A stretch of 64,000 nt of DNA from Ranitomeya imitator (Eukaryota), in assembly GCF_032444005.1 (NCBI RefSeq), contig NC_091289.1:164486001-164550000 (forward strand), given 5' to 3'. Under the pieces are notes generated by a model. It saw nothing but the letters and a program-made list of their open reading frames with translations. It ran no database searches and was not told where the DNA came from. Shown one piece after another: positions 3,425-63,988 of the stretch; the stretch's first letter is position 1; every line of letters starts with the position of its first letter. The translations under genes and the position numbers were made by a program.

Positions 3425-5216
3425 TTAATGGTCAGTGCTCAACATCTGCCAAACAGTTGGCTGAACCACTTGCAGAGTAAGTTTAACAAGCAGCTAAGGG
3501 TCTTTGCCTTTTGAGATTTTTTCTTGTACCTCTTCTTTTGTCTGCATTCTCCTTACATGTATATGCACCCTTTTTCTAGAGTACTGTGCCCATCTGGCTG
3601 CCATAAACATCCAAACAATGTGTGGGGTACAGGTTTCTACAACTATGTAAGTTGCCTCTAAAACTGAAAAATATAATCCTTTGTGAATATGTGTTTGCCA
3701 TATGTTAAAGTTCTATGGTATTAAAAGCAATAGTAACAAAATACTCATTTATTTATCTTTCTTTTCGCTTTAGGAATCTTCAATATGTCAAGCAGCAATA
3801 CATTGGGGAATATTGAGTCCAGAAGATAGTAAAGTCATAATAGTGGAAAGAATCCCAGGTCAAAAGAGTTATGAACAATCAACCAGGAATGGAATTACAT
3901 CAAAATCATTTGGCGCTTCTCCTTGGTCCTTTAAAGTTAGAATGTCAATTGAAGAACCAGAGGAGCCAGATCGGGAACCATTTAGATTACCAGCAGGTGA
4001 TTCATGTCTACTATTTTTCCATAGCATGCAAAAGTTTTATATCAAGAACAATGTGCTTATGTTACAAATTGCTTAGAAACCACAAAAGGTTTAAAACTAA
4101 ATTGGTCCATATGAAAAAACAAATACACAAGTTCATTTAAGATAAAAATTTTGCAGCAGTAACTATACTATATAATTACTAGACAAAATAGTTCTCATTC
4201 TCCACTGCAGGTTGGCAAAAGCAGTATGGGTTTATATAATTATTATGTCTTGCAACCGAGTTTCTTTTCAATTTTTAGACAACTTCTCCAAAGTGATGAT
4301 TTACGGAACACTAAGAGTTGATATCACTTTTTATAGATACTGTTAGAATTTATGCACATATCTTACCAAATTCTGTAGTTTAGTTTCCTTTCCAAACTCA
4401 GATTCAGCTGTGTGTCAGCATGCTATTTTATATACCAACTTATTCAAAAGTTATTTTCATTCTATTACCCGATATGTAATTTCCATTTTAGGAAAATCAT
4501 CTTGTTCATTAACTGCACTGCAAGTTAAAGATCGTTCTGCAGAGTAAGCATTGTTTTCTGTTTTCATTCCATTTTCCTACATTAGCTCTATCGTTTCATT
4601 AAATCAATTGGCAAAGTCTTCTCAAAAAGTAATTACTTATCCAAAAGAAAATTTTAATTTTCTGGGTTTCATTTGGTTAGAATGGACTGTCCATCTGATT
4701 GTATGAAAGACAAATCTCCAGTTTATGGATCTGGAACCTACGCATCAGTAAGTTGAAATGTTAAATAAAAGCGTAAGTACATTGAAAATGTAGCTGTGAC
4801 TGTGGCAAAAAAAAAACTAGAGAAATAAAGAAATAAAAATGTAAGAAAAGTTGTATTATTAGATATCTACCTTTTTCCGTAGGTTTCCTCCATGTGCAAA
4901 GCAGCTCTTCATGATGGAGTAATAGACAACAAAGGAGGAAAAATATTTATTGAAAAGGTTAAAGGGCTATCTAGTTATGAAGAAAGCACAAGGAATGGAG
5001 TGAAGTCCAATAAATACGGCTCTTCTAAAGAATCATTTAGAGTCTATAAGCCAAAGAGTAAACCTTCTGGATGGGAAACTGTGAAGAAACCAGAGCTTAC
5101 TGATCACACATCAACATTTGAAGCTTTGGAACCCTCCAAACAAACAGACCCTTTCCATCCTAAAGGAACAGAAGTAAATACTGAATCAGGTGGAAAGAAA
5201 ACTAAGAAACCGATAG
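3425..5216 (+). CDS. LCCL-pair unit 1
   Basis: Exons 3425-3476, 3580-3646, 3774-3996, 4492-4543, 4681-4747, 4883-5216; open; variants L>M (A3), R>K and P>S (B3). Confidence 0.87.
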
Positions 5217-8200
5217 GTAAAATTTTTTCATCAAGTTTATTAAAATGCATACTGGTAGTCAAAACAAAATAGTTCTGTGAAAGTAGGAAGTGAAAAAATA
5301 CACTTATTCCTAAATTAAAGCAAAAAGGCAGTGGCTACAGAGATTGTAGAAACATTTATAGCAGAGGTGTCAAACTGCATTCCTCGAGGGGCGCAAACAG
5401 GTCATGTTTTCAGGATTTCCTTGTATTGCACAGGTGATAATTTAATCACCTGCACAGAATGATTCCAGCACCTTGTGAAATACAAGGAAATCCTGAAAAC
5501 ATGACCTGTTTGCGGCCCTCGAGGAATGCAGTTTGACACCTCTGATTTATAGGACACCAGCCACTCAAATTCATTGCTGCTCCCAGTATACTCACACAAT
5601 GACATATTTTAATATATTCTTTAATTTTACAGTATGCAATTATTTGCTTTCTCATGAAATGCAGGATATAATACTGCAGCACACGTGTAACATTTTAGTA
5701 ACATGTAATATAATGAACAACCTGAGATCACTGTGATTAGATTAAAATACGTTTTGATCCATTTCATCATCTAGCAAGATATTGAATAGACTGAATGATT
5801 AAAGCATCTAGTTAATTAAAGCATCCATTTATGTTAGTGAGGACCTATAATACTATACATACACCAATAGAAACATGCTAGCCACCATTTCATCTATAGT
5901 TTGAAAAAATAAATTCGTAAGATTTTTTTTCTTTTTTCCTAATAGTTAATGGTCAGTGCTCAACATCTGCCAAACAGTTGGCTGAACCACTTGCAGAGTA
6001 AGTTTAACAAGCAGCTAAGGGTCTTTGCCTTTTGAGATTTTTTCTTGTATCTCTTCTTTTGTCTGAATTCTTCTCACATGTATATGCACCCTTTTTCTAG
6101 AGTACTGTGCCCATCTGGCTGCCATAAACATCCAAACAATGTGTGGGGTACAGGTTTCTACAACTATGTAAGTTGCCTCTAAAACTGAAAAATATAATCC
6201 TCTGTGAATGTGTGTTTGCCATATGTTAAAGTTCTATGGTATTAAAAGCAATAGTAACAAAATACTCATTTATTTATCTTTCTTTTTGCTTTAGGAATCT
6301 TCAATATGTCAAGCAGCAATACATTGGGGAATATTGAGTCCAGAAGATAGTAAAGTCATAATAGTGGAAAGAATCCCAGGTCAAAAGAGTTATGAACAAT
6401 CAACCAGGAATGGAATTACATCAAAATCATTTGGCGCTTCTCCTTGGTCCTTTAAAGTTAGATTGTCAATTGAAGAACCAGAGGAGCCAGATCGGGAACC
6501 ATTTAGATTACCAGCAGGTGATTCATGTCTACTATTTTTCCATAGCATGCAAGAGTTTTATATCAAGAACAATATGCTTATGTTACAAATTGCTTAGAAA
6601 CCACAAAAGGTTTAAAACTAAATCGGTCCATATGAAAAAACAAATACACAAGTTCATTTAAGATAAACATTTTGCAGCAGTAACTATACTATATAATTAC
6701 TAGACAAAATAGTTCTCATTCTCCACTGCAGGTTGGCAAAAGCAGTATGGGTTTATATAATTATTATGTCTTGCAACCGAGTTTCTGTTCAATTTTTAGA
6801 CAACTTCTCCAAAGTGATGATTGACGGAACACTAAGAGTTGATATCGCTTTTTATAGATACTGTTAGAATTTATGCACATTTCTTACCAAATTCTGTAGT
6901 TTAGTTTTCCTTTCCAAACTCAGATTCAGCTGTGTGTCAGCATGCTATTTTATATACCAACTTAGTAAAAAGTTATTTTCATTCTATTACCCGATATGTA
7001 ATTTCCATTTTAGGAAAATCATCTTGTTCATTAACTGCACTGGAAGTTAAAGATCGTTCGGCAGAGTAAGCATTGTTTTCTGTTTTCATTCCATTTTCCT
7101 ACATTAGCTCTATCGTTTCATTAAATCAATTGGCAAAGTCTTCTCAAAAAATAATTACTTATCCAATAGACAATTTTAATTTTCTGGGTTTCATTTGCTT
7201 AGAATGGACTGTCCATCTGATTGTATGAAAGACAAATCTCCAGTTTATGGATCTGGAACCTACGCATCAGTAAGTTGAAATGTTAAATAAGAGCGTAAGT
7301 ACATTGAAAATGTAGCTGTGACTGTGGAAAAAAAAAATAGAGAAATAAAGAAATAAAAATGTAAGAAAAGTTGTATTATTAGATATCTACCTTTTTCTGT
7401 AGGTTTCCTCCATGTGCAGAGCAGCTCTTCATAATGGAGTAATAGACAAGAAAGGAGGAAAAATATTTATTGAAAAGGTTAAAGGGCTACCTAGTTATGA
7501 AGAAAGCACAAGGAATGGAGTGAAGTCCAATAAATACGGCTCTTCTAAAGAATCATTTAGAGTCTATAAGCCAAAGAGTAAACCTTCTGGATGGGAAACT
7601 GTGAAGAAACCAGAGCTTACTGATCACACATCAACATTTGAAGCTTTGGAACCCTCCAAACAAACAGACCCTTTCCATCCTAAAGGAACAGAAGTAAATA
7701 CTGAATCAGGTGGAAAGAAAACTAAGAAACCGATAGGTAACATTTTTTCATAAAGTATATTAAAATGCATACTGATAGTCAAAACAAAATACTTCTGTGA
7801 TAGTAGGAAGTGAAAAAATACACTTATTCCTAAATTAAAGCAAAAAGGCAGTGGATACAGAGATTGTAGAAGCATTTATAGGACACCAGCCACTCAAATT
7901 CATTGCTGCACCCAGTATACTCACACAATGACATATTTTAATATATTCTTTAATTTTACAGTATGTAATTATTTGCTTTCTCATGAAATGCAGGATATAA
8001 TACTGCAGCACACGTTTAACATTTTAGTAACATGTAATATAATGAACAACCTGAGATCACTGTGATTAGATTAAAATATGTTTTGATCCATTTCATCATC
8101 TAGCAAGATATCGAATAGACTGAATGATTAAAGCATCTATTTAATTAAAGCATCCATTTATTTTAGTGAGGACCTATAATACTATAGATACACCAATAGA

Positions 8201-11200
8201 AACATGCTAGCCACCATTTCATCTATAGGTTGAAAATAAATTCGTAAGATTTTTTTTTCTTGTTTCCTAATAGTTAATGGTCAGTGCTCAACATCTGCCA
8301 AACAGTTGGCTGAACCACTTGCAGAGTAAGTTTAACAAGCAACTAAGGGTCTCTGCCTTTTGAGATTTTTTCTTGTACCTCTTCTTTTGTTTGCATTCTT
8401 CTTACATGTGTATGCACCCTTTTTCTAGAGTACTGTGCCCATCTGGCTGCCATAAACATCCAAACAATGTGTGGGGTACAGGTTTCTACAACTATGTAAG
8501 TTGCTTCTAAAACTGAAAAATATAATCCTCTGTGAACTTGTGTTTGCCATGTTAAAGTTCTATGGTATTAAAAGCAATAGTAAAAAATACCCATTTATTT
8601 ATCTTTCTTTTCGCTTTAGGAATCTTCAATATGTCAAGCAGCAATACATTGGGGAATATTGAGTCCAGAAGATAGTAAAGTCATAATAGTGGAAAGAATC
8701 CCAGGTCAAAAGAGTTATGAACAATCAACCAGGAATGGAATTACATCAAAATCATTTGGCGCTTCTCCTTGGTCCTTTAAAGTTAGATTGTCAATTGAAG
8801 AACCAGAGGAGCCAGATCGGGAACCATTTAGATTACCAGCAGGTGATTCATGTCTACTATTTTTCCATAGCATGCAAGAGTTTTATATCAAGAACAATGT
8901 GCTTATGTTACAAATTGCTTAGAAGCCACAAAGGGTTTAAAACTAAATCGGTTCATATGAAAAAACAAATACACAAGTTCATTTAAGATAAAAATTTAGC
9001 AGCAGTAACTATACTATATAGTTACTAGACAAAATAGTTCTCATTCTCCACTGCAGGTTGGCAAAGCAATATGGGTTTATATAATTATTATGTCTTGCAA
9101 CCGAGTTTCTGTTCAATTTTTAGACAACTTCTCCAAAGTGATGATTGACGGAACACTAAGAGTTGATATCGCTTTTTATAGATACTGTTAGAATTTATGC
9201 ACATTTCTTACCAAATTCTGTAGTTTAGTTTTCCTTTCCAAACTCAGATTCAGCTGTGTGTCAGCATGCTATTTTATATACCAACTTAGTCAAAAGTTAT
9301 TTTCATTCTATTACCCGATATGTAATTTCCATTTTAGGAAAATCATCTTGTTCATTAACTGCACTACAAGTTAAAGATCGTTCGGCAGAGTAAGCATTGT
9401 TTTCTGTTTTCATTCCATTTTCCTACATTAGCTCTATCGTTTCATTAAATCAATTGTCAAAGTCTTCTCACAAAATAATGACTTATCCAAAAGAAAATTT
9501 TAACTTTCTGGGTTTCATTTGCTTAGAATGGACTGTCCATCTGATTGTATGAAAGACAAATCTCCAGTTTATGGATCTGGAACCTACGCATCAGTAAGTT
9601 GAAATGTTAAATAAGAGCGTAAGTACATTGAAAATGTAGCTGTGACTGTGGAAAAAAAAAATAGAGAAATAAAGAAATAAAAATGTAAGAAAAGTTGTAT
9701 TATTAGATATCTACCTTTTTCCGTAGGTTTCCTCCATGTGCAGAGCAGCTCTTCATGATGGAGTAATAGACAACAAAGGAGGAAAAATATTTATTGAAAA
9801 GGTTAAAGGGCTACCTAGTTATGACGAAAGCACAAGGAATGGAGTGAAGTCCAATAAATACGGCTCTTCTAAAGAATCATTTAGAGTCTATAAGCCAAAA
9901 AGTAAACCTTCTGGATGGGAAACTGTGAAGAAACCAGAGCTTACTGATCACACATCAACATTTGAAGCTTTGGAACCCTCCAAACAAACAGACCCTTTCC
10001 ATCCTAAAGGAACAGAAGTAAATACTGAATCAGGTGGAAAGAAAACTAAGAAACCGATAGGTAACATTTTTTCATAAAGTATATTAAAATGCATACTGGT
10101 AGTCAAAACAAAATACTTCTGTGATAGTAGGAAGTGAAAAAATACACTTATTCCTAAATTAAAGCAAAAAGGCAGTGGCTACAGAGATTGTAGAAGCATT
10201 TATAGGACACCAGCCACTCAAATTCATTGCTGCACCCAGAATACTCACACAATGACATATTTTAATATATTCTTTAATTTTACAGTATGTAATTATTTGC
10301 TTTCTCATGAAATGCAGGATATAATACTGCAGCACACGTTTAACATTTTAGTAACATGTAATATAATGAACAACCTGAGATCACTGTGTGTTAGGGACTG
10401 GCGGAACGCACCAAGAATCAGATGTTATGGTATTAGGTGCGTTCGCAGTCCGAGGTCCACCGTGCAGGTAAAAGACCCTGCTGCTAGTAAGATGGACTAT
10501 ATGGCGGTACTAAGTATACACACATGGGTTAACTTCACCCTGCGTGAAGGAAGCGATCCTGTTGCGTCACAGGACCGCAGTACCGCACATAAAGCGCGAG
10601 CAAGAAGTCAGCGGACTCAACCCCTACACAGGATTGAAGTCCGATTAGACACTTGCTGGCACAACACCGCAACTGGGTGTGTCAGAGGAACATAAATAAT
10701 AATATTAAGGCACAAGAGTGCGTGCGGTGCCGCACTGACGGACGCCACTAACCACCCAGGCTTGGGTCAGGAAAGCGCAGAGCAAGCGCACAGCGCCATA
10801 CTGGCGGACACAGCAACTGGTAGCTGTAATGTGTGTTTCGTGCTGTTGGATAAGTCGGGCACTAGATAGCAAACATACACCTTCCACGAACAGACATTCA
10901 ATAGGGAGGGTTATTTAAAGAGCGACTTTCACTCACAACACACACACATATTTACAAGACAATACTAGCGCATGGCCGTGCGGTCATGCGCAGTTTATAT
11001 AGCTGCAGCACAGGAAACAGCTACAGAAGTTTTGCCCTTTCAGGACCTGCCAAAAGGACCAATGGGATGTGCTGCAGTACCTGAGCATGTGACCCTCGAT
11101 CTCCAACGGGAGATCCTGCCCTGGGCATGCTCAGACAGAGAAAAGCAGGACTTAGATCCAGAAACGTCCACTCGCCGCTGCCCAGCACTGGCTTCAATGG

Positions 11201-14200
11201 CAGAAGCAGGAAAAGCAGCAGTAACTCTTCGCACAGAGTCAGACTGAGCGAGACGCTGGGATCGACGTCCCTGCTGAGCAGACTCCACTGTGGCTGGAGA
11301 AGAATGGGAGACCGCAGCGGAGACGGATCGAGATTCCCCCTGTGTAGCAGAGGAAACTCGACTCCTAACATTACCCCCCCTACTAGGGCCCCCCCTCCTT
11401 GGGCCTCGCTACGTTCGAAGGCAGCAATGAGCTGCGGGGCCCGAATGTGCTCAACAGGCTCCCAGGACCTGTCCTCGGGGCCATAACCCTTCCAGTCCAC
11501 CAAATAAAATTTTTTGCCACGTACCACCTTGAACCCCAAAATAGCGTTCACCTCATAATCGTCCGTAGACGAACCCGATGTCCCAGCAGATGACTCGGAA
11601 AACCGGGACATATACACGGGTTTCAAGAGGGACACATGAAAGGTGTCGGTGATACCCAGGCGTGGCGGAAGGGCCAAACGATAGAGCTCAGGATTAACCT
11701 GCTCGAGGACCTTGAATGGGCCCAAGTCGCGAGGAGCAAATTTAGTGGACTCAACTCGCAGCCTGATGTTACGGGCGGAGAGCCACACTAAATCGCCAGG
11801 AGCAAAGGTTGGGGCAGGGCGCCGATGTCCATCGGCGGAGAACCTCATTCTCTCCTTCGAGGCCCGAATGGCATCCTGAGTGCGGTCCCAAATGTCCCGT
11901 GCCTCCACTGCCCAGTCTGCCACCCTGCAGTCAGCAGAGGACACGGGCATAGGCACAGGAACCCGCGGATGCTGGCCGTAATTAAGGAGGAAAGGAGTCT
12001 GACCGGTGGAGTCGGCTACAGCGTTATTAAGGGCGAACTCTGCCCATGGTAATAAAGATGCCCAGTCATCCTGCCTGGCAGAAACAAAATGTCGTAGATA
12101 TGTGACCAGAGTCTGATTGGCCCTCTCTACCAACCCATTCGTCTCGGGATGATATGCGGAAGAGAGATTTAACTCAATGCTGAGAAGACGACAAAGCTCT
12201 CTCCAGAACCGAGACGCAAACTGGGGACCCCGGTCACTGACAATTTTGTCTGGCATGCCGTGTAGGCGGAAGATGTGTCTTATGAACAACGCTGCCAAGG
12301 CCCGTGCAGAAGGTAACCGTGGGAGCGGCACCAAATGCACCATTTTCGAGAAATGATCGGTAATAACCCAAATGATGGTACAGCCGCGAGACTTCGGCAA
12401 ACCCACTACAAAGTCCATCCCGACCATCTCCCAGGGCCTGTCTGCCACCGGCAAGGGATAGAGTAACCCAGACGGCCGTTGTCGAGGAGACTTATTTTTG
12501 GCGCATGAGACACACGCCAGAACATAATCTCTGACATCTCGGAGCATATGCGGCCACCAGTACGTCCTCGCCAGCAGCTCAGATGTCCTTTTTGTCCCAA
12601 AGTGTCCACCCACCCTGGAGGAATGAGCCCAAGAGAGAACCTCCGGTCGCAAATTTATGGGCACAAAAGTCTTGCCCGGAGGCACAGACTCAAGCGACAC
12701 CGGAGCCACGGTTCTCAAGCTCTCAGAAGGAACAATAAGCCGAGGCTCTTCTTCCTCCTCCTCAGATGACACAACAGAGTGAGAAAGAGCATCAGCTCGA
12801 ATATTCTTCTCCCCAGCGAGATAATGGAGGGTGAAGTGGAATCGGGAGAAGAATAAGGACCATCTGGCCTGGCGAGAATTTAGCCCTGGGCTGTTTGCAA
12901 ATAGAGCAAATATTTGTGGTCTGTAAAAACTTGAAAGGGAAAACGAGCCCCCTCCAAGAGATGTCTCCACTCTGAGAAAGCCAATTTCATCGCTAGCAAC
13001 TCCCTGTCCCCGATGGAATAATTCCTCTCCGCTGGTGTGAAGGTCTTGGAGAAGAAGAAGCACGGATGCTTCCGACCTTGAGCATCCTTTTGGAAGAGGA
13101 CTGCTCCGGCACCAACGGAAGAGGCATCCACCTCCATTATAAACGATTTATCGACATTGGGACGATGTAGGATGGGAGCGCTAGCAAAATGAGACTTAGT
13201 AGAAGAAAAGGCCTTGGAGACCTCTTCAGACCACACTTTGGGATTTGCTCCCTTCTTGGTGAGGGCTACCAAGGGAGCTACCAAAGTTGAGAAATGGGGA
13301 ATGAACTGGCGGTAATAATTAATGAACCCCATAAAGCGCTGCACCGCTTTAAGTGAATGGGGTTCTTGCCAGTCCATCACAGCCTGTAGTTTGGCAGGAT
13401 CCATAGCCAATCCCTGGGCAGAGATGATATAGCCCAGGAAAGGTAAAGACTCCTGCTCAAACACACACTTCTCCAACTTTGCGTAAAGAGAGTTTGCCCG
13501 TAAGAGGTCGAAGACTCTGCCAACATCTCTCCGGTGGGAGTCAATATCTGGAGAGAAGATGAGAATATCATCCAGATAGACTACGACCGAGGTGGAAAGC
13601 ATATCCCGGAAGATGTCGGTGACAAAGTCTTGGAAAACAGCTGGGGCATTACAGAGCCCGAAGGGCATCACCAGATACTCATAGTGCCCATCTCTGGTGT
13701 TAAACGCCGTCTTCCATTCGTCCCCCTCACGGATGCGAATCAGGTTATAAGCTCTCCGCAGGTCTAATTTAGTAAATACCTTAGCTCCCCGTAGCCTATC
13801 AAAAAGCTCAGAAATCAGGGGCAGCGGGTACTTATTCTTAACGATGATGGCGTTAAGACCCCTGTAGTCTATGCAAGGATGCAACTCTCCATTCTTCTTC
13901 TGTATGAAGAAGAACCCTGCCCCTGCTGGTGACACTGACTTCCTAATAAACCCTCTTGCCAAATTCTCCTGGATGTACTGGGACATAGCCTCCGTTTCCG
14001 GGAGAGAGAGGGGATAGGCACGTCCCCGAGGAGGTTCTGCTCCAGGCAAGAGATCTATAGGACAGTCATAGGGACGGTGAGGCGGAAGGGTCTCCGCGGC
14101 CTTTTTGGAGAAGACGTCTGCATAAGACCAATAGTATTTGGGGAGAGTAGAGAGATCTGCAGGCATCTCAGTGGTGGAAACCTGAACGCACTCTAACGGT

Positions 14201-17200
14201 TACTGGTTTGGCAAGCTTAACCAGAGGTACTGCGTGGCGCAGAGCAAAAGCAGAAAACATAAAATTTCCTTCTGCTCCTGAATCCACACAAAGCTCTACT
14301 GTAAGAGTGGATGTGCCTAACAGGATTGTCCCTTTAAAGGACAATTTGGAGGAAAATGCTGCTGTGTCCAGTGAACCTCCTCCAATGGTCACTAGACGCG
14401 ATCGTTTTCCCGACCGCCGTGGACATTTATTAGCGTAATGTCCCGGTTGCTGGCAATTTTTACACACCAAAGGTACTCGAGCGGTCTGAGACCTAGGTCC
14501 CACTCAAGAAACCTCCATGGCCTCATGGGAGTCAGACGCCATAACAGAAGATTCTAGAGGTTTGGCAAAGGTGGGAGCCAGCCGAAACCTCTGCCTACAC
14601 TGGGTCCGCTCCAACCTCCGCTCGTTAAAACGGAGATCGATGTGGGTAGCTATAGTAATAAGCTCCTCCAGTGTGGCGGGAATCTCCCTGGTGGCCAAGG
14701 CGTCCTTTACATGATCTGCCAGTCCTTTCCAGAACACCGGAATAAGGACTTTATCCGGCCATTCCAGCTCAGAAGCTAGAGTCCGGAATAGGATGGCGAA
14801 CTGGCTGACCATGGACAAAGCCGGAGTAATTGCCAACAATTGAAGCGCGGTATCGTGGGTGACACGGGGTTCCAAAAAGACCTGCCTCAGAGCGTCCAGG
14901 AAGATAGGAGCACTCTGTACCACACGATCACCACGTTCCCAAAGCGGCATTGCCCACTCCAACGCCCTGCCTGACAAAAGAGACAAGATGAATCCCACCC
15001 TCGCCCGTTCCGTAGGAAAACGTGCAGCCAGCAGCTCGAGATGTATGGAGCACTGGCTCACGAATCCCCGACATAGCTTACTGTCACCAGCAAACTTGTC
15101 TGGAAGCGGGAGATGGGATAAGGTCGGAGCAGGGGTGGCAGAGGACAAACTGGCTGCAACTGCACTGGCAGCCTGAACAGCGACAGCAGTAACGTCCACA
15201 GCTGAGGTTGCACGCTCTAGAGCCGCCAACCTACCCTCCAGCTGTTGGATGTACCGCTGTGAACGCTGATCGTCCATCATTACTAGCCAGACCTTGGCGC
15301 TAGTATTCTGTTAGGGACTGGCGGAACGCACCAAGAATCAGATGTTATGGTATTAGGTGCGTTCGCAGTCCGAGGTCCACCGTGCAGGCAAAAGACCCTG
15401 CTGCTAGTAAGATGGACTATATGGCGGTACTAAGTATACACACATGGGTTAACTTCACCCTGCGTGAAGGAAGCGATCCTGTTGCGTCACAGGACCGCAG
15501 TACCGCACATAAAGCGCGAGCAAGAAGTCAGCGGACTCAACCCCTACACAGGATTGAAGTCCGATTAGACACTTGCTGGCACAACACCGCAACTGGGTGT
15601 GTCAGAGGAACATAAATAATAATATTAAGGCACAAGAGTGCGTGCGGTGCCGCACTGACAGACACCACTAACCACCCAGGCTTGGGTCAGGAAAGCGCAG
15701 AGCAAGCGCACAGCGCCGTACTGGCGGACACAGCAACTGGTAGCTGTAATGTGTGTTTAGTGCTGTTGGATAAGTCGGGCGCTAGATAGCAAACATACAC
15801 CTTCCGCGAACAGACATTCAATAGGGAGGGTTATTTAAAGAGCGACTTTCACTCACAACACACACACATATTTACAAGACAATACTAGCGCATGGCCGTG
15901 CGGTCATGCGCAGTTTATATAGCTGCAGCACAGGAAACAGCTACAGAAGTTTTGCCCTTTCAGGACCTGCTAAAAGGACCAATGGGATGTGCTGCAGTAC
16001 CTGAGCATGTGACCCTCGATCTCCAACGGGAGATCCTGCCCTGGGCATGCTCAGACAGAGAAAAGCAGGACTTAGATCCAGAAACGTCCACTCGCCGCTG
16101 CCCAGCACTGGCTTCAATGGCAGAAGCAGGAAAAGCAGCAGTAACTCTTCGCACAGAGTCAGACTGAGCGAGACGCTGGGATCGACGTCCCTGCTGAGCA
16201 GACTCCACTGCGGCTGGAGAAGAATGGGAGACCGCAGCGGAGACGGATCGAGATTCCCCCTGTGCAGCAGAGGAAACTCGACTCCTAACACTGTGATTAG
16301 ATTAAAATATGTTTTGATCCATTTCATCATCTAGCAAGATATTGAATAGACTGAATGATTAAAGCATCTAGTTAATTAAAGCATCCATTTATTTTAGTGA
16401 GGACCTATAATACTATACATACACCAATAGAAACATGCTAGCCACCATTTCATCTATAGGTTGAAAATAAATTCGTAAGATTTTTTTTCTTGTTTCCTAA
16501 TAGTTAATGGTCAGTGCTCAACATCTGCCAAACAGTTGGCTGAACCACTTGCAGAGTAAGTTTAACAAGCAACTAAGGGTCTCTGCCTTTTGAGATTTTT
16601 TCTTGTACCTCTTCTTTTGTTTGCATTCTTCTTACATGTATATGCACCCTTTTTCTAGAGTACTGTGCCCATCTGGCTGCCAAAAACATCCAAACAATGT
16701 GTGGGGTACAGGTTTCTACAACTATGTAAGTTGCTTCTAAATCTGAAAAATATAATCCTCTGTGAACTTGTGTTTGCCATATGTTAAAGTTCTATGGTAT
16801 TAAAAGCAATAGTAAAAAATACCCATTTATTTATCTTTCTTTTCGCTTTAGGAATCTTCAATATGTCAAGCAGCAATACATTGGGGAATATTGAGTCCAG
16901 AAGATAGTAAAGTCATAATAGTGGAAAGAATCCCAGGTCAAAAGAGTTATGAACAATCAACCAGGAATGGAATTACATCAAAATCATTTGGCGCTTCTCC
17001 TTGGTCCTTTAAAGTTAGATTGTCAATTGAAGAACCAGAGGAGCCAGATCGGGAACCATTTAGATTACCAGCAGGTGATTCATGTCTACTATTTTTCCAT
17101 AGCATGCAAGAGTTTTATATCAAGAACAATGTGCTTATGTTACAAATTGCTTAGAAACCACAAAAGGTTTAAAACTAAATCGGTCCATATGAAAAAACAA

Positions 17201-53200: not shown

Positions 53201-56200
53201 CTGCAGCACACGTTTAACATTTTAGTAACATGTAATATAATGAACAACCTGAGATCACTCTGATTAGATTAAAATACGTTTTGATCCATTTCATCATCTA
53301 GCAAGGTATTGAATAGACTGAATGATTAAATCATCTAGTTAATTAACCCCTTAGTGACAGAGCCAAATTTTTGAAATCTGACCAGTGTCACTTTATGTGG
53401 TAATAACTCTGGAATGCTTCAACAAATCCCAGTGATTTTGAGATTGTTTTTTCGTGACACATTATACTTTATGATAATGGTAAATTTAGGTTGATATGCT
53501 TTATGTTTATTTATAAAAAATATCAGAAATTTGAAAAAAATGTTAAAAAATTAGCAATTTGCAAACTTTGAATGATTATCCCTTTTATCCCGATAGTCAT
53601 ACCACAGCAAAACATTAATAAATAACATTTCCCACATGTCGGCTTTACAACAGCACCATTTGCAAAATGTTATTTTATTTTGTTAGCATTTTAGGAGGAT
53701 TAAAAATGTAGCAACAATTTAAATTTTTTTCAAGGAAATTTACAAAATGTATTTTTTTTAGGGACCTATCCATGTTTGAAGTGAATTTCGGGGTCCTATT
53801 TATAGGGAAATCCCCACAAGTGACACCATTTTAAAAACAGCACCCCCTGATATATTGAAAACTGCAGTCAGGTCGTTTGTTAACCCTTCGGGTGATTTTC
53901 AGGAATTAATGCAAAGTGTCATGAGAAAAATGAAAATGTGTATTTTTATCACCTAAATGTCACTAACTTCTGAACAGATTACTACAGCCGACAGACTCTA
54001 AGGCCGCTATTTGGTCATGAATTGCCATGGCAAACATCAGGACCACACAATTATGATCTGAGACCACCAATTGGGATAAAGAGGAAGCCCCCACAGTCTG
54101 TTAACCGTTTATAATGATGTAGTCACTATTGACAGCAGCATCTAGGGGGTTAAATAGATTTGGACGGTGCAAACACTGATCGTGGCTGATGCAGCAAGTT
54201 GTCAGCTATAGTGGACAGCTGACAGCTACTGGATTGTCACCCGTATGGGGATATAAGTCTCTTATATCTCAGGTCAGTTAAAAGGCGTATTGGCGGTCAC
54301 TAAGGGGTTAAAGCATCCATTTGTTTTAGTGAAGACCTATAATACCATACATACACCAATAGAAACATGCTAGTCAGCCACCATTTCATCTATAGGTTGA
54401 AAATAAATTCGTAAGATTTTTTTTTCTTGTTTCCTAATAGTTAATGGTCAGTGCTCAACATCTGCCAAACAGTTAGCTGAACCACTTGCAGAGTAAGTTT
54501 AACAAGCAGCTAAGGGTCTCAGCCTTTTGAGATTTTTTCTTGTACCTCTTCTTTTGTCTGCATTCTTCTTACATGTTTATGCACCGTTTTTCTAGAGTAC
54601 TGTGCCCATCTGGCTGCCATAAACATCCAAACAATGTGTGGGGTACAGGTTTCTACAACTATGTAAGTTGCCTCTAAAACTGAAAAATATAATCCTCTGT
54701 GAACGTGTGTTTGCCATATGTTAAAGTTCTATGGTATTAAAAGCAATAGTAACAAAATACTCATTTATTTATCTTTCTTTTCGCTTTAGGAATCTTCAAT
54801 ATGTCAAGCAGCAATACATTGGGGAATATTGAGTCCAGAAGATAGTAAAGTCATAATAGTGGAAAGAATCCCAGGTCAAAAGAGTTATGAACAATCAACC
54901 AGGAATGGAATTACATCAAAATCATTTGGCGCTTCTCCTTGGTCCTTTAAAGTTAGATTGTCAATTGAAGAACCAGAGGAGCCAGATCGGGAACCATTTA
55001 GATTACCAGCAGGTGATTCATGTCTACTATTTTTCCATAGCATGCAAGAGTTTTATATCAACAACAATGTGCTTATGTTACAAATTGCTTAGAAACCACA
55101 AAAGGTTTAAAACTAAATCGGTCCATATGAAAAAACAAATACACAAGTTCATTTAAGATAAAAATTTTGCAGCAGTAACTATACTATATAGTTGCTAGAT
55201 AAAATAGTTCTCATTCTCCACTGCAGGTTGGCAAAAGCAGTATGGGTTTATATAATTATTATGTCTTGCAACCGAGTTTCTTTTCAATTTTTAGACAACT
55301 TCTCCAAAGTGATGATTTACGGAACACTAAGAGTTGATATCACTTTTTATAGATACTGTTAGAATTTATGCACATTTCTTACCAAATTCTGTAGTTTAGT
55401 TTTCCTTTCCAAACTCAGATTCAGCTGTGTGTCAGCATGCTATTTTATATACCAACTTATTCAAAAGTTATTTTCATTCTATTACCCGATATGTAATTTC
55501 CATTTTAGGAAAATCATCTTGTTCATTAACTGCACTACAAGTTAAAGATCGTTCAGCAGAGTAAGCATTGTTTTCTGTTTTCATTCCATTTTCCTACATT
55601 AGCTCTATCGTTTCATTAAATCAATTGTCAAAGTCTTCTCACAAAATAATGACTTATCCAAAAGAAAATTTTAATTTTCTGGGTTTCATTTGCTTAGAAT
55701 GGACTGTCCATCTGATTGTATGAAAGCCAAATCTCCAGTTTATGGATCTGGAACCTACGCATCAGTAAGTTGAAATGTTAAATAAGAGCGTAAGTACATT
55801 GAAAATGTAGCTGTGACTGTGGCGAAAAAAAAAAACTAGAGAAATAAAGTAAGAAAAATGTAAGAAAAGTTGTATTATTAGATATCTACCTTTTTCCGTA
55901 GGTTTCCTCCATGTGCAGAGCAGCTCTTCATGATGGAGTGATAGACAACAAAGGAGGAAAAATATTTATTGAAAAGGTTAAAGGGCTACCTAGTTATGAA
56001 GAAAGCACAAGGAATGGAGTGAAGTCCAATAAATACGGCTCTTCTAAAGAATCATTTAGAGTCTATAAGCCAAAGAGTAAACCTTCTGGATGGGAAACTG
56101 TGATGAAACCAGAGCTTACTGATCACACATCAACATTTGAAGCTTTGGAACCCTCCAAACAAACAGACCCTTTCCATCCTAAAGGAACAGAAGTAAATAC

Positions 56201-59200: not shown

Positions 59201-62200
59201 TTCTTGTACCTCTTCTTTTGTCTGCATTCTTCTTACATGTTTATGCACCGTTTTTCTAGAGTACTGTGCCCATCTGGCTGTCATAAACATCCAAACAATG
59301 TGTGGGGTACAGGTTTCTACAACTATGTAAGTTGCCTCTAAAACTGAAAAATATAATCCTCTGTGAACGTGTGTTTGCCATATGTTAAAGTTCTATGGTA
59401 TTAAAAGCAATAGTAACAAAATACTCATTTATTTATCTTTCTTTTCGCTTTAGGAATCTTCAATATGTCAAGCAGCAATACATTGGGGAATATTGAGTCC
59501 AGAAGATAGTAAAGTCATAATAGTGGAAATAATCCCAGGTCAAAAGAGTTATGAACAATCAACCAGGAATGGAATTACATCAAAATCATTTGGCGCTTCT
59601 CCTTGGTCCTTTAAAGTTAGATTGTCAATTGAAGAACCAGAGGAGCCAGATCGGGAACCATTTAGATTACCAGCAGGTGATTCATGTCTACTATTTTTCC
59701 ATAGCATGCAAGAGTTTTATATCAAGAACAATGCGCTTATGTTACAAATTGCTTAGAAACCACAAAAGGTTTAAAACTAAATTGGTCCATATGAAAAAAC
59801 AAATACACAAGTTCATTTAAGATAAAAATTTTGCAGCAGTAACTATACTATATAGTTGCTAGATAAAATAGTTCTCATTCTCCACTGCAGGTTGGCAAAA
59901 GCAGTATGGGTTTATATAATTATTATGTCTTGCAACCGAGTTTCTTTTCAATTTTTAGACAACTTCTCCAAAGTGATGATTTACAGAACACTAAGAGTTG
60001 ATATCACTTTTTATAGATACTGTTAGAATTTATGCACATTTCTTACCAAATTCTGTAGTTTAGTTTTCCTTTCCAAACTCAGATTCAGCTGTGTGTCAGC
60101 ATGCTATTTTATATACCAACTTATTCAAAAGTTATTTTCATTCTAATACCCGATATGTAATTTCCATTTTAGGAAAATCATCTTGTTCATTAACTGCACT
60201 ACAAGTTAAAGATCGTTCGGCAGAGTAAGCATTGTTTTCTGTTTTCATTCCATTTTCCTACATTAGCTCTATCGTTTCATTAAATCAATTGTCAAAGTCT
60301 TCTCACAAAATAATGATTTATCCAAAAGAAAATTTTAATTTTCTGGGTTTCATTTGCTTAGAATGGACTGTCCATCTGATTGTATGAAAGCCAAATCTCC
60401 AGTTTATGGATCTGGAACCTACGCATCAGTAAGTTGAAATGTTAAATAAGAGCATAAGTACATTGAAAATGTAGCTGTGACTGTGGCAAAAAATAAACTA
60501 GAGAAATAAAGTAAGAAAAATGTAAGAAAAGTTGTATTATTAGATATCTACCTTTTTCCGAAGGTTTCCTCCATGTGCAGAGCAGCTCTTCATGATGGAG
60601 TAATAGACAACAAAGGAGGAAAAATATTTATTGAAAAGGTTAAAGGGCTACCTAGTTATGAAGAAAGCACAAGGAATGGAGTGAAGTCCAATAAATACGG
60701 CTCTTCTAAAGAATCATTTAGAGTCTATAAGCCAAAGAGTAAACCTTCTGGATGGGAAACTGTGAAGAAACCAGAGCTTACTGATCACACATCAACATTT
60801 GAAGCTTTGGAACCCTCCAAACAAACAGACCCTTTCCATCCTAAAGGAACAGAAGTAAATACTGAATCAGGTGGAAAGAAAACTAAGAAACCGATAGGTA
60901 ACATTTTTTCATAAAGTATATTAAAATGCACACTGATAGTCAAAACAAAATACTTCTGTGATAGTATGAAGTGAAAAAATACACTTATTCCTAAATTAAA
61001 GAAAAAAGGTAGTGGCTACAGAGATTGTAGAAGAATTTATAGGACACCAGCCACTCAAATTCATTGCTGCTCCCAGTATACTCACACAATGACATATTTT
61101 AATATATTCTTTAATTTTACAGTATGCAATTATTTGCTTTCTCATGAAATGCGGGATATAACACTGCAGCACACGTTTAACATTTTAGTAACATGTAATA
61201 TAATGAACAACCTGAGATCACTCTGATTAGATTAAAATACGTTTTGATCCATTTCATCATCTAGCAAGGTATTGAATAGACTGAATGATTAAATCATCTA
61301 GTTAATTAAAGCATCCATTTGTTTTAGTGAGGACCTATAATACCATACATACACCAATAGAAACATGCTAGTCAGCCACCATTTCATCTATAGGTTGAAA
61401 ATAAATTCGTAAGATTTTTTTTTCTTTTTTCCTAATAGTTAATGGTCAGTGCTCAACATCTGCCAAACAGTTGGCTGAACCACTTGCAGAGTAAGTTTAA
61501 CAAGCAGCTAAGGGTCTCAGCCTTTTGAGATTTTTTCTTGTACCTCTTCTTTTGTCTGCATTCTTCTTACATGTATATGCACCCTTTTTCTAGAGTACTG
61601 TGCCCATCTGGCTGCCATAAACATCCAAACAATGTGTGGGGTACAGGTTTCTACAACTATGTAAGTTGCCTCTAAAACTGAAAAATATAATCCTCTGTGA
61701 ACGTGTGTTTGCCATATGTTAAAGTTCTATGGTATTAAAAGCAATAGTAACAAAATACTCATTTATTTATCTTTCTTTTCGCTTTAGGAATCTTCAATAT
61801 GTCAAGCAGCAATACATTGGGGAATATTGAGTCCAGAAGATAGTAAAGTCATAATAGTGGAAAGAATCCAAGGTCAAAAGAGTTATGAACAATCAACCAG
61901 GAATGGAATTACATCAAAATCATTTGGCGCTTCTCCTTGGTCCTTTAAAGTTAGATTGTCAATTGAAGAACCAGAGGAGCCAGATCGGGAACCATTTAGA
62001 TTACCAGCAGGTGATCCATGTCTACTATTTTTCCATAGCATGCAAGAGTTTTATATCAAGAACAATGTGCTTATGTTACAAATTGCTTAGAAACCACAAA
62101 GGTTTTTAAACTAAATTGGTCCATATGAAAAAACAAATACACAATTTCATTTAAGATAAAAATTTTGCAGCAGTAACCATACTATATAGTTACTAGACAA

Positions 62201-63988
62201 AATAGTTCTCATTCTCCATTGCAGGTTGGCAAAGCAGTATGGGTTTATATAATTATTATGTCTTGCAACCGAGTTTCTTTTCAATTTTTAGACAACTTCT
62301 CCAAAGTGATGATTTACGGAACACTAAGAGTTGAAATCACTGTTTATAGATACTGTTAGAATTTATGCACATTTCTTACCAAATTCTGTAGTTTAGTTTT
62401 CCTTTCCAAACTCAGATTCAGCTGTGTGTCAGCATGCTATTTTATATACCAACTTATTCAAAAGTTATTTTCATTCTATTACCCGATATGTAATTTCTAT
62501 TTTAGGAAAATCATCTTGTTCATTAACTGCACTGGAAGTTAAAGATCGTTCTGCAGAGTAAGCATTGTTTTCTGTTTTCATTTCATTTTCCTATATTAGC
62601 TCTATCGTTTCATTAAATCAATTGTGAAAGTCTTCTAAAAAAAAAATTACTTATCCAAAAGAAAATTTTAATATTCTGGGTTTCATTTGCTTAGAATGGA
62701 CTGTCCATCTGACTGTATGAAAGACAAATCTCCAGTTTATGGAATTGGAACCTACGCATCAGTAAGTTGAAATGTTAAATAAGAGCGTAAGTGCATTGAA
62801 AATGTAGCTGTGACTGTGGAAAAAAACTGGAGAAATAAAGAAATAAAAATTTAAGAAAAGTTGTATTATTAGATATCTACCTTTTTCCGTAGGTTTCCTC
62901 CATGTGCAGAGCAGCTCTTCATAATGGAGTAATAGACAACAAAGGAGGAAAAATATTTATTGAAAAGGTTAAAGGGCTACCTAGTTATGAAGAAAGCACA
63001 AGGAATGGAGTGAAGTCCAATAAATACGGCTCTTCTAAAGAATCATTTAGAGTCTATAAGCCAAAGAGTAAACATTCTGGATGGGAAACTGTGAAGAAAC
63101 CAGAGCTTACTGATCACACATCAACATTTGAAGCTTTGGAACCCTCCAAACAATCAGACCCTTTCCATCCTAAAGGAACAGAAGTAAATACTGAATCAGG
63201 TGGAAAGAAAACTAAGAAACCGATAGGTAACATTTTTTCATAAAGTATATTAAAATGCATACTGGTAGTCAAAACAAAATACTTCTGTGACAGTAGAAAG
63301 TGAAAAAATACACTTATTCCTAAATTAAAGCAAAAAGGCAGTGGCTACAGAGATTGTAGAAGAATTTATAGGACACCAGCCACTCAAATTCATTGCTGCT
63401 CCCAGTATACTCACACAATGACATATTTTAATATATTCTTTAATTTTACAGTATGCAATTATTTGCTTTCTCATGAAATGCAGGATATAATACTGCAGCA
63501 CACGTTTAACATTTTAGTAACATGTAATATAATGAACAACCTGAGATCACTGTGATTAGATTAAAATACATTTTGATCCATTTCATCATCTAGCAAGATA
63601 TGGAATAGACTGAATGGTTAAAGCATCTAGTTAATTAAAGCATCCATTTATTTTAGTGAGGACCTATAATGCTAGACATACACCAATAGAAACATGCTAG
63701 TCAGCCACCATTTCATCTATAGGTTGAAAATAAATTCGTAAGATTTTTTTTCTTTTTTCCTAATAGTTAATGGTCAGTGCTCAACATCTGCCAAACAGTT
63801 GGCTGAACCACTTGCAGAGTAAGTTTAACAAGCAACTAAGGGTCTCTGCCTTTTGAGATTTTTTCTTGTACCTCTTCTTTTGTCTGCATTCTTCTTACAT
63901 GTATATGCACCGTTTTTCTAGAGTACTGTGCCCATCTGGCTGCCATAAACATCCAAACAATGTGTGGGGTACAGGTTTCTACAACTAT
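3425..63988 (+). CDS. Giant multi-exon poly-LCCL protein (partial, both ends outside window): at least 36 complete cochlin/vitrin-type LCCL domains, ~4,800 aa in window
   Basis: Spliced unit: [18 protein letters not shown]|[22 protein letters not shown]|[74 protein letters not shown]|[18 protein letters not shown]|[22 protein letters not shown]|[111 protein letters not shown]. All introns are GT-AG with pyrimidine tracts; phases 1-2-0-1-2-0-1; 795 nt per unit. LCCL motifs CPxxC, V[WY]GxxxY, SSxCxAAxHxG, YxxSxRNG, SF are present. Exon model is predicted, with no transcript evidence. Confidence 0.9.
5362..5544. mobile_element. hAT (Charlie-like) MITE, 183 bp, near-perfect palindrome
   Basis: Long TIRs cagaggtgtcaaactgcattcctcgaggg / ccctcgaggaatgcagtttgacacctctg; 8-bp TSD atttatag (5354-5361, 5545-5552); absent from the equivalent site in other units. 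Confidence 0.92.
5946..7736 (+). CDS. LCCL-pair unit 2
   Basis: Exons 5946-5997, 6101-6167, 6295-6517, 7014-7065, 7203-7269, 7403-7736; open. Confidence 0.87.
8274..10060 (+). CDS. LCCL-pair unit 3
   Basis: Exons 8274-8325, 8429-8495, 8620-8842, 9338-9389, 9527-9593, 9727-10060; open. Confidence 0.87.
10389..11370 (-). repeat. 3' LTR of element 2
   Basis: tgttaggg...ctaaca; about 10 substitutions versus 15309-16290. Confidence 0.95.
11371..15280 (-). pseudogene. gag-pol of element 2 (disrupted)
   Basis: CGA>TGA stop at 14504-14506; ~230-bp deletion in the protease region near 14190 relative to element 3; 1-bp frameshift near 12885 between RNase H and integrase. Confidence 0.9.
15309..16290 (-). 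repeat. 5' LTR of element 2
   Basis: Matches 10389-11370; TATA (minus strand ATATAAA) at ~15914-15920. Confidence 0.95.
16504..18292 (+). CDS. LCCL-pair unit 4
   Basis: Exons 16504-16555, 16659-16725, 16852-17074, 17571-17622, 17760-17826, 17959-18292; open; H>Q, L>S, P>R variants. Confidence 0.87.
18622..19888. mobile_element. Non-autonomous piggyBac-like DNA element (1267 bp)
   Basis: TTAA duplication (18618-18621, 19889-19892) at host gattaaaatacg; CCCCTT...AAGGGG termini; no transposase ORF. Confidence 0.82.
20090..25281 (+). CDS. LCCL-pair unit 5 (L2 LINE in A3-B1 intron)
   Basis: Exons 20090-20141, 20245-20311, 20438-20660, 24562-24613, 24751-24817, 24948-25281; open. Confidence 0.85.
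20714..24118 (+). mobile_element. L2-clade LINE (CR1 group)
   Basis: Interrupts host caagaac|aatgtgc; APE endonuclease plus RT ORF; L2-type 3' UTR (gactgtgagccctcgcgggcagggtcc) and (AAT)n tail; no clear TSD. Confidence 0.93.
20725..23895 (+). CDS. L2 ORF2: endonuclease-reverse transcriptase, 1056 aa
   Basis: WNARS, LTETWL, GDFN and SDH endonuclease motifs; [25 protein letters not shown] and YADD RT motifs; HWLP C-terminal region; no internal stop. Confidence 0.92.
25819..27612 (+). CDS. LCCL-pair unit 6
   Basis: Exons 25819-25870, 25974-26040, 26168-26390, 26887-26938, 27076-27142, 27279-27612; open. Confidence 0.87.
28153..29946 (+). CDS. LCCL-pair unit 7
   Basis: Exons 28153-28204, 28308-28374, 28502-28724, 29221-29272, 29410-29476, 29613-29946; open. 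Confidence 0.87.
30487..32279 (+). CDS. LCCL-pair unit 8
   Basis: Exons 30487-30538, 30642-30708, 30836-31058, 31555-31606, 31744-31810, 31946-32279; open. Confidence 0.87.
32350..33332 (-). repeat. 3' LTR of element 3
   Basis: tgttaagg...ctaaca; only one mismatch seen versus 37497-38479. Confidence 0.95.
33333..37469 (-). CDS. Gag-Pol polyprotein (Gag, protease, RT, RNase H, integrase, chromodomain), 1378 aa
   Basis: Single open ORF: DSGA protease, YLDD, RNase [21 protein letters not shown]...SDRG...ETNG integrase, YLVDWKGHG chromodomain; stop lies at the PPT/LTR boundary. Confidence 0.95.
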   Translation of the reverse strand: MADIQQSLRYIQQLEGRLKVLENSTSAVDVTAVAVKAAGVAAATLSTATPVPTLSRLPLPEKFSGDCKTCRGFVSQCSIHLELLAARFPTERAKVGFIVSLLSDRALEWATPLWERDDHVVQSAPLFLGTLKKVFLGPQLTHDTALQLLALTQGESLVSHFSVRFRTLASELEWSDKALIPIFWRGLADHVKDALATREIPATLEELISISTRIDLRFNERRLERAQCRQRFRLAPTFAKPLESPVQASESHETLEVTRAGSKSQSARAHKVRHVCQQSGRLVSKSPQRSGKRQRLVAVGGGTLDTATFASKLSFKGTITIGPSTLTVELCLDSGAEGNFMSSAFAQRHAIPLVMLAQPVTVRVVNGSTLPSQITHQTIPFTLSVSPSHQEIISLLVIPEGIDEVLLGMPWLRYHSPHIEWSSGRILGWSKSCEGRCQRECVQVATTQVPADLSSLPKHYWSHADVFSKRAAETLPPHRPYDCPIDLLPGAEPPRGRVYPLSLPETEAMSQYIQENLARGFIRKSVSPAGAGFFFVQKKTGDLRPCIDYRGLNAITVKNKYPLPLISELFDRLRGAKVFTKLDLRGAYNLIRIREGDEWKTAFNTRDGHYEYLVMPFGLCNAPAVFQDFVNDIFRDMLTTSVVVYLDDILIYSPDIDSHRRDVRKVFDLLRANSLYAKLEKCVFEQESLPFLGYIISAQGLAMDPAKLQAVMDWQEPHSLKAVQRFMGFINYYRQFIPHFSTLVAPLVALTKKGANPKLWSEEVSKAFLSIKSHFASAPILHRPDVDKPFILEVDASSVGAGAVLFQKDAQGRKHPCFFFSKTFTPAERNYSIGDRELLAMKLAFSEWRHLLEGARFPFQVFTDHKNLVYIQTAQRLNSRQARWSLFFSRFHFTLHFLSGEKNVRADALSRSVVSSEEEEPRLIVPPESLRTVAPVSLESVPPGKTFVPANLRPEVLSWAHSSRVGGHFGTKRTSELLARTYWWPHMVRDVKDYIQACVSCAQNRSPRQRPAGLLYPLPVADRPWEMVGMDFVVGLPKSRGCSIIWVVTDHFSKMVHLVPLPRLPSARALAVLFMKHVFRLHGMPDKIVSDRGPQFASRFWRELCRLLSIELNLSSAYHPETNGLVERTNQTLVTYLRHFVSARQDDWASLLPWAEFALNNAVADSTGQTPFLLNYGQHPRVPVPMPVSSTDSRVADWAVEARDIWDRTQDAIRASKERMRVSADTHRRPAPVFAPGDLVWLSARNIRLRVESTKFAPRYIGPFKVLEQVNPVVYRLAIPPRLGITDTFHVSLLKPVRLSRFSELSAGTSGSSTDEFEVNAIVGSKVVRGKKFYLVDWKGHGPEDRTWEPVEHIRAPQLIAVFERSEAQGGGGPRRGG
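37497..38479 (-). repeat. 5' (middle) LTR of element 3
   Basis: Near-identical to 32350-33332; PBS-position sequence at 37485-37495. Confidence 0.95.
39494..41288 (+). CDS. LCCL-pair unit 9
   Basis: Exons 39494-39545, 39649-39715, 39843-40065, 40562-40613, 40751-40817, 40955-41288; open. Confidence 0.87.
41829..43616 (+). CDS. LCCL-pair unit 10
   Basis: Exons 41829-41880, 41984-42050, 42178-42400, 42896-42947, 43085-43151, 43283-43616; open. Confidence 0.87.
44157..45943 (+). CDS. LCCL-pair unit 11
   Basis: Exons 44157-44208, 44312-44378, 44506-44728, 45222-45273, 45411-45477, 45610-45943; open. Confidence 0.87.
46485..48272 (+). CDS. LCCL-pair unit 12
   Basis: Exons 46485-46536, 46640-46706, 46834-47056, 47552-47603, 47741-47807, 47939-48272; open. 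Confidence 0.87.
48813..50599 (+). CDS. LCCL-pair unit 13
   Basis: Exons 48813-48864, 48968-49034, 49162-49384, 49878-49929, 50067-50133, 50266-50599; open. Confidence 0.87.
51142..52934 (+). CDS. LCCL-pair unit 14
   Basis: Exons 51142-51193, 51297-51363, 51491-51713, 52210-52261, 52399-52465, 52601-52934; open. Confidence 0.87.
53347..54307. mobile_element. Non-autonomous piggyBac-like DNA element (961 bp)
   Basis: TTAA TSD (53343-53346, 54308-54311); 12-bp TIR ccccttagtgac / gtcactaagggg; no ORF. Confidence 0.88.
54441..56235 (+). CDS. LCCL-pair unit 15
   Basis: Exons 54441-54492, 54596-54662, 54790-55012, 55509-55560, 55698-55764, 55902-56235; open. Confidence 0.87.
56776..58565 (+). 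CDS. LCCL-pair unit 16
   Basis: Exons 56776-56827, 56931-56997, 57125-57347, 57844-57895, 58033-58099, 58232-58565; open. Confidence 0.87.
59105..60897 (+). CDS. LCCL-pair unit 17
   Basis: Exons 59105-59156, 59260-59326, 59454-59676, 60173-60224, 60362-60428, 60564-60897; open; B3 acceptor is AAG rather than TAG. Confidence 0.82.
61439..63226 (+). CDS. LCCL-pair unit 18
   Basis: Exons 61439-61490, 61594-61660, 61788-62010, 62506-62557, 62695-62761, 62893-63226; open. Confidence 0.87.
63767..63988 (+). CDS. LCCL-pair unit 19, partial (A1 and A2 exons; array continues past the right edge)
   Basis: Exons 63767-63818 and 63922-63988 with intact splice sites. Confidence 0.85.

Follow-up and report, generated by a model that had tools for sequence, protein, structure and literature searches.

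The window analysed here, a 64,000-nt stretch of the genome of the frog Ranitomeya imitator, covers the middle of one very large protein-coding gene, whose central part runs on the + strand from 3425 to 63988 and is open at both window ends. It consists of 18 complete cassettes of ~2.33 kb each followed by a partial 19th: a 26-nt anchor motif taken from the first exon marked 19 cassette starts on the + strand, from 3425 to 63767, with a start-to-start spacing of 2328-2335 bp wherever the sequence is free of transposons. Every cassette contains exons of 52, 67, 223, 52, 67 and 334 nt, altogether 795 nt coding for 265 aa, with intron phases 2,0,1,2,0,1 along the cassette. Used as BLAST queries together with 10-nt flanks, the six exons of unit 1 retrieved exactly 110 matches, all of them on the + strand, ungapped and 94-100% identical, and each of the 110 copies is preceded by AG and followed by GT. 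Once joined, these exons make up 14,429 nt encoding 4,809 aa in a single frame with no stop codon, exon 6 of each cassette joining exon 1 of its successor in frame throughout the array. Phase-1 introns lie on both sides of each three-exon LCCL module, so any cassette splices in frame to any other. An earlier note on this DNA had read from the letters six GT-AG exons per 2.33-kb unit, the last joining the next unit in frame, and 110 exons without stop or frameshift coding for ~4,800 aa and at least 36 LCCL domains; all of this was borne out, the domain count of the window being 36 complete LCCLs and the beginning of a 37th. Tandem Repeats Finder, with a longest period of 500, missed this array of ~2.33-kb repeats.

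The order of elements within a cassette is LCCL-A, an acidic 18-aa linker (linker A), LCCL-B and a basic 56-aa linker (linker B). In unit 1, exon 1 (3425-3476, 52 nt), preceded by a phase-1 intron, encodes the start of LCCL-A with its first Cys; exon 2 (3580-3646, 67 nt) carries Cys 2 and 3 and matches positions 23-43 of the Pfam profile; and exon 3 (3774-3996, 223 nt) supplies the remainder of the domain and linker A. LCCL-B starts in exon 4 (4492-4543, 52 nt), proceeds through exon 5 (4681-4747, 67 nt), which bears its Cys 2 and 3 and is also aligned by Pfam, and is completed in exon 6 (4883-5216, 334 nt), which adds linker B. Units 2-8 occupy 5946-32279 of the + strand, with starts at 5946, 8274, 16504, 20090, 25819, 28153 and 30487; units 9-18 occupy 39494-63226 of the same strand and start at 39494, 41829, 44157, 46485, 48813, 51142, 54441, 56776, 59105 and 61439. 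Unit 19 is represented by exons 1 and 2 (63767-63988, +), and the gene continues past the window.

Both domains of every cassette display the cysteine spacing C-x15-C-x3-C-x19-C (residues 4, 20, 24, 44 and 118, 134, 138, 158 of the 265-aa unit), and none of the four Cys varies when 30 two-domain pieces from 14 proteins are aligned. Single exons sufficed for recognition by the Pfam LCCL profile PF03815, exon 3 with an E-value of 1.3e-12 (profile positions 45-93 of 96) and exon 6 with 2.9e-14, at scores of 48-54 bits for a gathering cut-off of 22.6, and the 22-aa exons 2 and 5 align to profile positions 23-44. LCCL-A and LCCL-B of one cassette have the same exon layout and are identical at 46 positions of a 128-column alignment (~36%). 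The latter domain aligned with the LCCL of cochlin (1JBI) over 90 residues with an E-value of 3e-14. An AlphaFold model of one cassette, which took the alignment of 30 two-domain pieces as its input, reached a pLDDT >90 in both LCCLs, ~56 in linker A and ~54 in linker B, and the top PDB match of this model in Foldseek was again 1JBI (target TM-score 0.85, rmsd 2.3 Å). The matches ranking next were Rxt3 subunits, which are known to have the fold of the LCCL domain, and the ESM Atlas yielded generic LCCL clusters, nothing more specific. The cysteine spacing and the motifs AEVLCP, VYG..YASVSS.C.AA.H.GV.DN.GGKI and SYEESTR listed in the earlier note were all found in the spliced protein, and the assignment of the repeat made there to the LCCL domain of cochlin and vitrin agrees with both the profile and the structural comparison.

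Three RefSeq models reproduce parts of the window protein exactly. Residues 899-1848 of XP_069593836.1 equal residues 1-950 of the window protein (units 1-4), residues 5-496 of XP_069593733.1 equal 2273-2764 (units 9-11) and all 794 residues of XP_069593837.1 equal 3867-4660 (units 15-18), the three models combined holding 46% of the window coding sequence. Starting 2 bp past XP_069593837.1, a fourth model (4,410 aa) extends downstream, and all four are titled 'uncharacterized protein'. The gene is thus not unannotated, as the earlier note had thought possible; rather, the RefSeq models split one gene wrongly. XP_069593836.1 has a genomic span of 100.4 kb, which places the start of the gene ~82.6 kb before the window, and its upstream part comprises a signal-like hydrophobic stretch at the N-terminus and five divergent LCCLs, together with a B-like LCCL and an additional cassette. 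Compared with Pfam, this model contains 14 LCCLs (1,012 bits) and no other credible domain. Its signal peptide was called by eye from the hydrophobic segment. Since this segment lies upstream in the same model whose last 950 residues equal units 1-4, the product is predicted from sequence to be secreted, in line with the upstream signal-peptide exon anticipated in the earlier note. Together the models (898 + 4,660 + 4,410 aa) account for no fewer than ~9,968 aa, a length that would be exceeded if further cassettes lie in the 82 kb upstream; the protein is probably ~10,000 residues long and the gene probably carries more than 35 cassettes.

The gene is transcribed and spliced. RNA-type contigs of runs X1 (organism A) and X5 cross the joints 3476>3580, 3646>3774, 3996>4492, 4543>4681 and 4747>4883 of unit 1, as well as the cassette-to-cassette joint 5216>3425, at which the donor of exon 6 is connected to exon 1 of the following cassette, and the stretches skipped at these joints have GT..AG ends in all cases. 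Exon 6 words are present in runs of six further organisms, with spliced contigs in organisms E and H showing the same joints, the cassette-to-cassette joint included, and spliced contigs in organism B showing the joints of exons 4 to 6, while the contig of run X4 is unspliced and looks like DNA or pre-mRNA. Altogether, the six junctions predicted in the earlier note were recovered in R. imitator and in at least two related species, splicing was seen in RNA-type contigs of four species, and the exons of the related species are ~4% diverged and gap-free. Contig depth amounted to ~1,500-2,800 in exons versus 0-12 in introns, the exon values being inflated by the collapse of near-identical cassettes into one contig and therefore no measure of high expression. 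The short-read junction 5216>3425 is compatible with any number of cassettes per mRNA, and the skipping of whole cassettes yields an identical junction. An abundant contig of run X1 leaves exon 3 at 3991, five bases early, and enters an LCCL-start sequence absent from the window; therefore, at least one other type of cassette exists elsewhere in the gene, probably downstream.

The array carries the traces of a recent history. Divergence is 1.7-2.5% among units 1-5, the older copies, and units 6-8 are members of a young subfamily. Across units 6-18, three subfamilies are interleaved; among units 9-18 they are made up of units 9, 14, 15 and 17, of units 10, 12 and 18, and of units 11, 13 and 16, the nearest relatives (U9/U15, U11/U13 and U10/U12/U18) being 0.1-0.5% apart. 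This interleaving of nearly identical copies points to recent multi-cassette duplications, and the array would have grown through recent unequal crossing-over of the 2.33-kb six-exon cassette. The last 222 nt upstream of 3425 are ordinary intron-6 sequence, hence the array extends upstream, and the intron before unit 1 contains part of a Ty3/gypsy element with gag and protease (1-3202, - strand). Intron 6 of unit 3 is occupied by a degraded Ty3/gypsy element (10389-16290, -) with 982-bp LTRs that are 98.98% alike, intron 3 of unit 5 by a LINE ORF2 in sense orientation (20725-23895, +; endonuclease and reverse transcriptase, 1,056 aa without stop), and intron 6 of unit 8 by an antisense Ty3/gypsy chromovirus-like element (32344-38857, -) flanked by 1,370-bp LTRs. 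The latter retains an uninterrupted ORF of 1,378 aa at 33333-37469 with gag, protease, RT, RNaseH, integrase and chromodomain; its LTRs are 99.49% alike, which suggests that the element is young, and it is possibly still mobile. Set against the distances between cassettes, the LTR identities of 99.0% and 99.5% indicate that amplification and insertion are of similar, recent age. Each transposon insertion is private to one cassette, which argues against an assembly artefact; this explanation is unlikely also in view of five different transposon insertions and cassette-specific substitutions that tag the copies and are exactly reproduced in the RefSeq models.

Smaller insertions complete the picture of the introns. 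At 5353-5545, intron 6 of unit 1 contains an insertion of ~190 bp whose halves form an inverted repeat (87% alike), resembling a MITE; the depth over it exceeds 10,000 in some runs and, in most of the runs compared, across several frog species, no other part of the window is covered more deeply. Unrelated insertions entered intron 6 of three cassettes within ~20 bp of the same position, at ~3202, 10389 and 18630 (reference positions ~317, 322-328 and 335-338), namely the gypsy fragment, the degraded gypsy element and an unclassified 1.27-kb piece, and this site may be an insertion hotspot. The intron-6 insertions at 18622-19889 (~1.27 kb, unit 4) and 53347-54307 (~0.96 kb, unit 14) have no match elsewhere in the window.

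Cassettes that are 0.1-2.5% apart and similar in age to the LTR insertions are also what would be expected of a young, selfishly amplified array whose transcription and splicing are a side effect of the host promoter and in which the extra cassettes have no function. The near-neutral pace of amino-acid change would suit such an origin as well: pN/pS among cassettes is 0.56, and among the changes listed between species the ratios of nonsynonymous to synonymous codon changes, obtained on collapsed contigs, are 10:3, 14:5 and 11:3 and hence close to neutral. However, the 110 exons have lost neither frame nor splice sites. Comparison among cassettes uncovered no indel event in 795 bp of exon versus 16 in 1,386 bp of intron (P ~1e-4), and variable sites amount to 0.050 per bp in exons versus 0.115 in introns. 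At the intron rate 9.2 indel events and ~5 nonsense changes would be expected in the exons, and neither was seen; therefore, youth alone is insufficient to account for the intact frame. In addition, the spliced multi-cassette form has been kept in species with ~4% exon divergence, and all this makes a functionless array highly improbable. A non-coding satellite and a dead pseudogene array are both ruled out by the splicing in four species and the indel-free exons, so the claim of the earlier note that a gene, rather than a satellite, lies here holds. Selection thus acts against frame-breaking changes, the constraint on individual residues being weak and amino-acid change fast, with linker sequence in particular changing rapidly between species. 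What is conserved is an open, spliceable frame and a cysteine scaffold, not the exact residues, and this weak constraint suits a spacer or a fast-evolving protein as well as a specific lectin.

Some clues to function come from the single LCCL domains of other proteins. The LCCL of cochlin, once released by proteolysis, traps bacteria and attracts cells of the innate immune system (PMC7526977), and that of akhirin binds bacteria directly (PMC12839204). By analogy, we favour as the overall best explanation, with a probability of roughly 0.6, that the gene encodes a giant secreted multi-LCCL protein acting as a high-avidity binder of microbes or sulfated glycans. The encoded product is a beads-on-a-string chain, predicted to be secreted and almost purely LCCL with short flexible linkers, in which a signal peptide is followed by five divergent N-terminal LCCLs and dozens of the 265-aa cassettes. 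Held together in an extracellular fluid, gel or matrix, many LCCLs could bind microbial surfaces or sulfated glycans with high avidity or agglutinate them, the job of the single released cochlin or akhirin domains being multiplied by copy number; with ~70 LCCLs per chain, very high avidity, cross-linking or agglutination might be reached. The target of selection would then be copy number and the open frame, rather than the exact residues. It is tempting to go further and to envisage, as a tentative proposal that we consider possible rather than probable, that the protein of Ranitomeya poison frogs, of at least 10,000 aa, more than 1 MDa and at least 70 LCCLs, ranks among the largest of vertebrates and is a non-mucin, lectin-like polymer for trapping microbes or cross-linking glycans, its length tuned by rapid gain and loss of cassettes and diversified by skipping variants. 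That polymer would sit in a secretion or barrier fluid, and in-frame skipping of cassettes would produce size variants from one gene.

In both cochlin and akhirin, it is the proteolytically released LCCL that acts (PMC7526977, PMC12839204), and this precedent could be taken to mean that the giant chain is a polyprotein precursor, its linkers being cut in the secretory pathway or after secretion to free soluble effectors comparable to the cleaved cochlin LCCL, either two-LCCL pieces of ~30 kDa or single-LCCL pieces of ~11-16 kDa. Identical repeated cassettes are typical of such precursors, and linker B, which is rich in Lys, Pro, Ser and Thr and predicted to be disordered, exposes Lys-Lys pairs within a KKTKKP stretch in every cassette. 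Nonetheless, the cassette sequence contains no furin-type R-x-K/R-R site, the linkers diverge quickly between species, and those of other amphibian poly-LCCL proteins are short, composed of Pro, Ser and Thr, and devoid of basic pairs, so that we regard a precursor of this kind as unlikely.

Near-neutral residue change combined with an open frame and a maintained copy number would also be the mark of a structural component of a gel, adhesive or matrix, for which length and cross-linking count and any binding of microbes is incidental; an egg coat, the mucus used in tadpole carrying, or the matrix of the inner ear or of a brain barrier could be the setting. The protein encoded by the window is very large and basic (526 kDa, pI 8.75), rich in Ser, Lys, Glu, Gly and Pro and without any N-glycan sequon, and some frog relatives possess low-complexity C-terminal repeats, all of which would be in keeping with such a role. 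On the other hand, no VWD, cystine-knot or other polymerisation domain occurs in the parts of the gene examined, and the 18- and 56-aa linkers, with a Ser/Thr/Pro share of only 28-36%, are not mucin-like. A purely structural product therefore appears quite doubtful to us, and the multivalent binder of microbes or sulfated glycans remains our preferred reading.

The LCCL is a small and poorly understood extracellular domain; the vertebrate proteins from which it is known contain it once or twice, and recent work has connected it with bacterial trapping. With dozens of LCCLs in one natural chain, the R. imitator protein would offer a ready test of avidity as the working principle of this domain and, if it traps microbes, poly-LCCL proteins would represent a second kind of giant barrier polymer alongside mucins. 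In poison frogs, for which skin microbes and chytrid infection matter, the protein is a candidate constituent of secretions of the skin, the egg coat or a barrier. The locus is, furthermore, a clear case of annotation cutting one huge repeat gene into 'uncharacterized proteins' and leaving about half of it uncalled, and related genes in other amphibians are probably fragmented likewise. A literature search for poly-LCCL proteins of amphibians or chordates, and for their LOC identifiers, retrieved no paper. What is new here is the scale of the expansion and its expression; the poly-LCCL architecture itself is of a known kind, in an unstudied family.

This architecture has relatives in many lineages. 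A HMMER search with exon 6 returned 1,152 proteins at an E-value <=0.001, with a top cluster from R. imitator, and the taxonomic picture drawn here is based on the names of 30 of the 150 matches listed out of these 1,152. A word-prefiltered homology search with the 794-aa XP_069593837.1 yielded this protein itself and one newt protein. Among the HMMER matches listed, proteins with 4-11 tandem LCCLs are predicted in the frogs Engystomops, Pelobates, Mixophyes, Ascaphus and Aquarana, in a newt (11 LCCLs) and a caecilian (8), and in a lungfish, tunicates, amphioxus and some bacteria. The earlier note's picture of vertebrate LCCL proteins, with one domain or two, is therefore outdated, and its suggestion of a lineage-specific gene stands for the scale of the expansion but not for the architecture, which is old and found across chordates. 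Bacterial proteins with five tandem LCCLs, from a Paracoccaceae MAG and Phytohabitans flavus, rank high among the matches listed, which means that the poly-LCCL architecture is not restricted to animals.

In a tree of individual domains, the N-terminal LCCLs of the R. imitator gene pair with single domains of the Engystomops, Pelobates and Mixophyes proteins, and the A-type and B-type domains of the cassette adjoin N-terminal LCCL 3 and LCCL 4, respectively. Because N-terminal and cassette LCCLs pair in this way with individual domains of the frog multi-LCCL proteins, the latter are likely orthologues (Engystomops pustulosus XP_071984131.1, Pelobates fuscus XP_063284115.1, Mixophyes fleayi XP_075040093.1 and Ascaphus truei XP_075472667.1), and the same pairings identify the R. 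imitator gene, as judged from sequence, as the local form of a gene of 5-10 LCCLs that is widespread in frogs, with one of its domain pairs multiplied. The frog proteins measure ~700-1,400 aa and their 5-10 LCCLs are mutually divergent, whereas the R. imitator window alone contains at least 18 copies of the amplified pair. The C-termini of the Pelobates and Engystomops relatives bear long Trp/Asn-rich short repeats and a common GFFSxWG tail. A separate, second family of frog poly-LCCL proteins, which includes R. imitator CAJ0918915.1, has Thr/Ser/Pro linkers and repeats homogenised per species.

Beyond frogs, the chordate set comprises Lissotriton helveticus XP_078499425.1 (11 LCCLs), Rhinatrema bivittatum XP_029474005.1 (8) and Protopterus annectens, and among invertebrates Styela clava (9 LCCLs), Clavelina, Phallusia and Branchiostoma. 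These predictions have in common with the R. imitator gene a signal peptide followed by tandem LCCLs only and the homogenisation of repeats within species. XP_069593836.1 itself combines a signal peptide, called by eye, with more than the four LCCLs by which we delimit poly-LCCL proteins and with no other domain. The other chordate proteins are, however, ~500-1,250 aa long with short Pro/Ser/Thr linkers, and none comes near the length of the R. imitator product.

Among characterised proteins, cochlin is likewise secreted, and LCCL-B shares the core VYG..YASVSS.C.AA.H.GVI.N.GG with 1JBI, but in cochlin a single LCCL is combined with two vWA domains, in place of dozens of LCCLs. Pfam found no vWA in XP_069593836.1 or in the 4,809 aa of the window, and membership of the cochlin/vitrin family is thereby ruled out. 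Vitrin/akhirin and CRISPLD1/2 are further extracellular LCCL proteins of vertebrates; they carry one or two LCCLs together with vWA or CAP, neither of which occurs in XP_069593836.1, and the lack of a CAP/SCP domain in this model rules out the CRISPLD family. Gel-forming mucins and SCO-spondin are very long secreted chains of repeated modules, with a copy number altered by unequal crossing-over, and the R. imitator product would, by analogy, likewise be a very long secreted chain of a repeated module. Its linker composition and the absence of VWD from XP_069593836.1 rule out a gel-forming mucin, and neither VWD nor cystine-knot ends were detected in the parts of the gene examined. The repeat itself also differs, being in mucins a Pro/Thr/Ser stretch within a single exon and in R. 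imitator a folded, disulfide-bonded, lectin-like domain spread over three exons.
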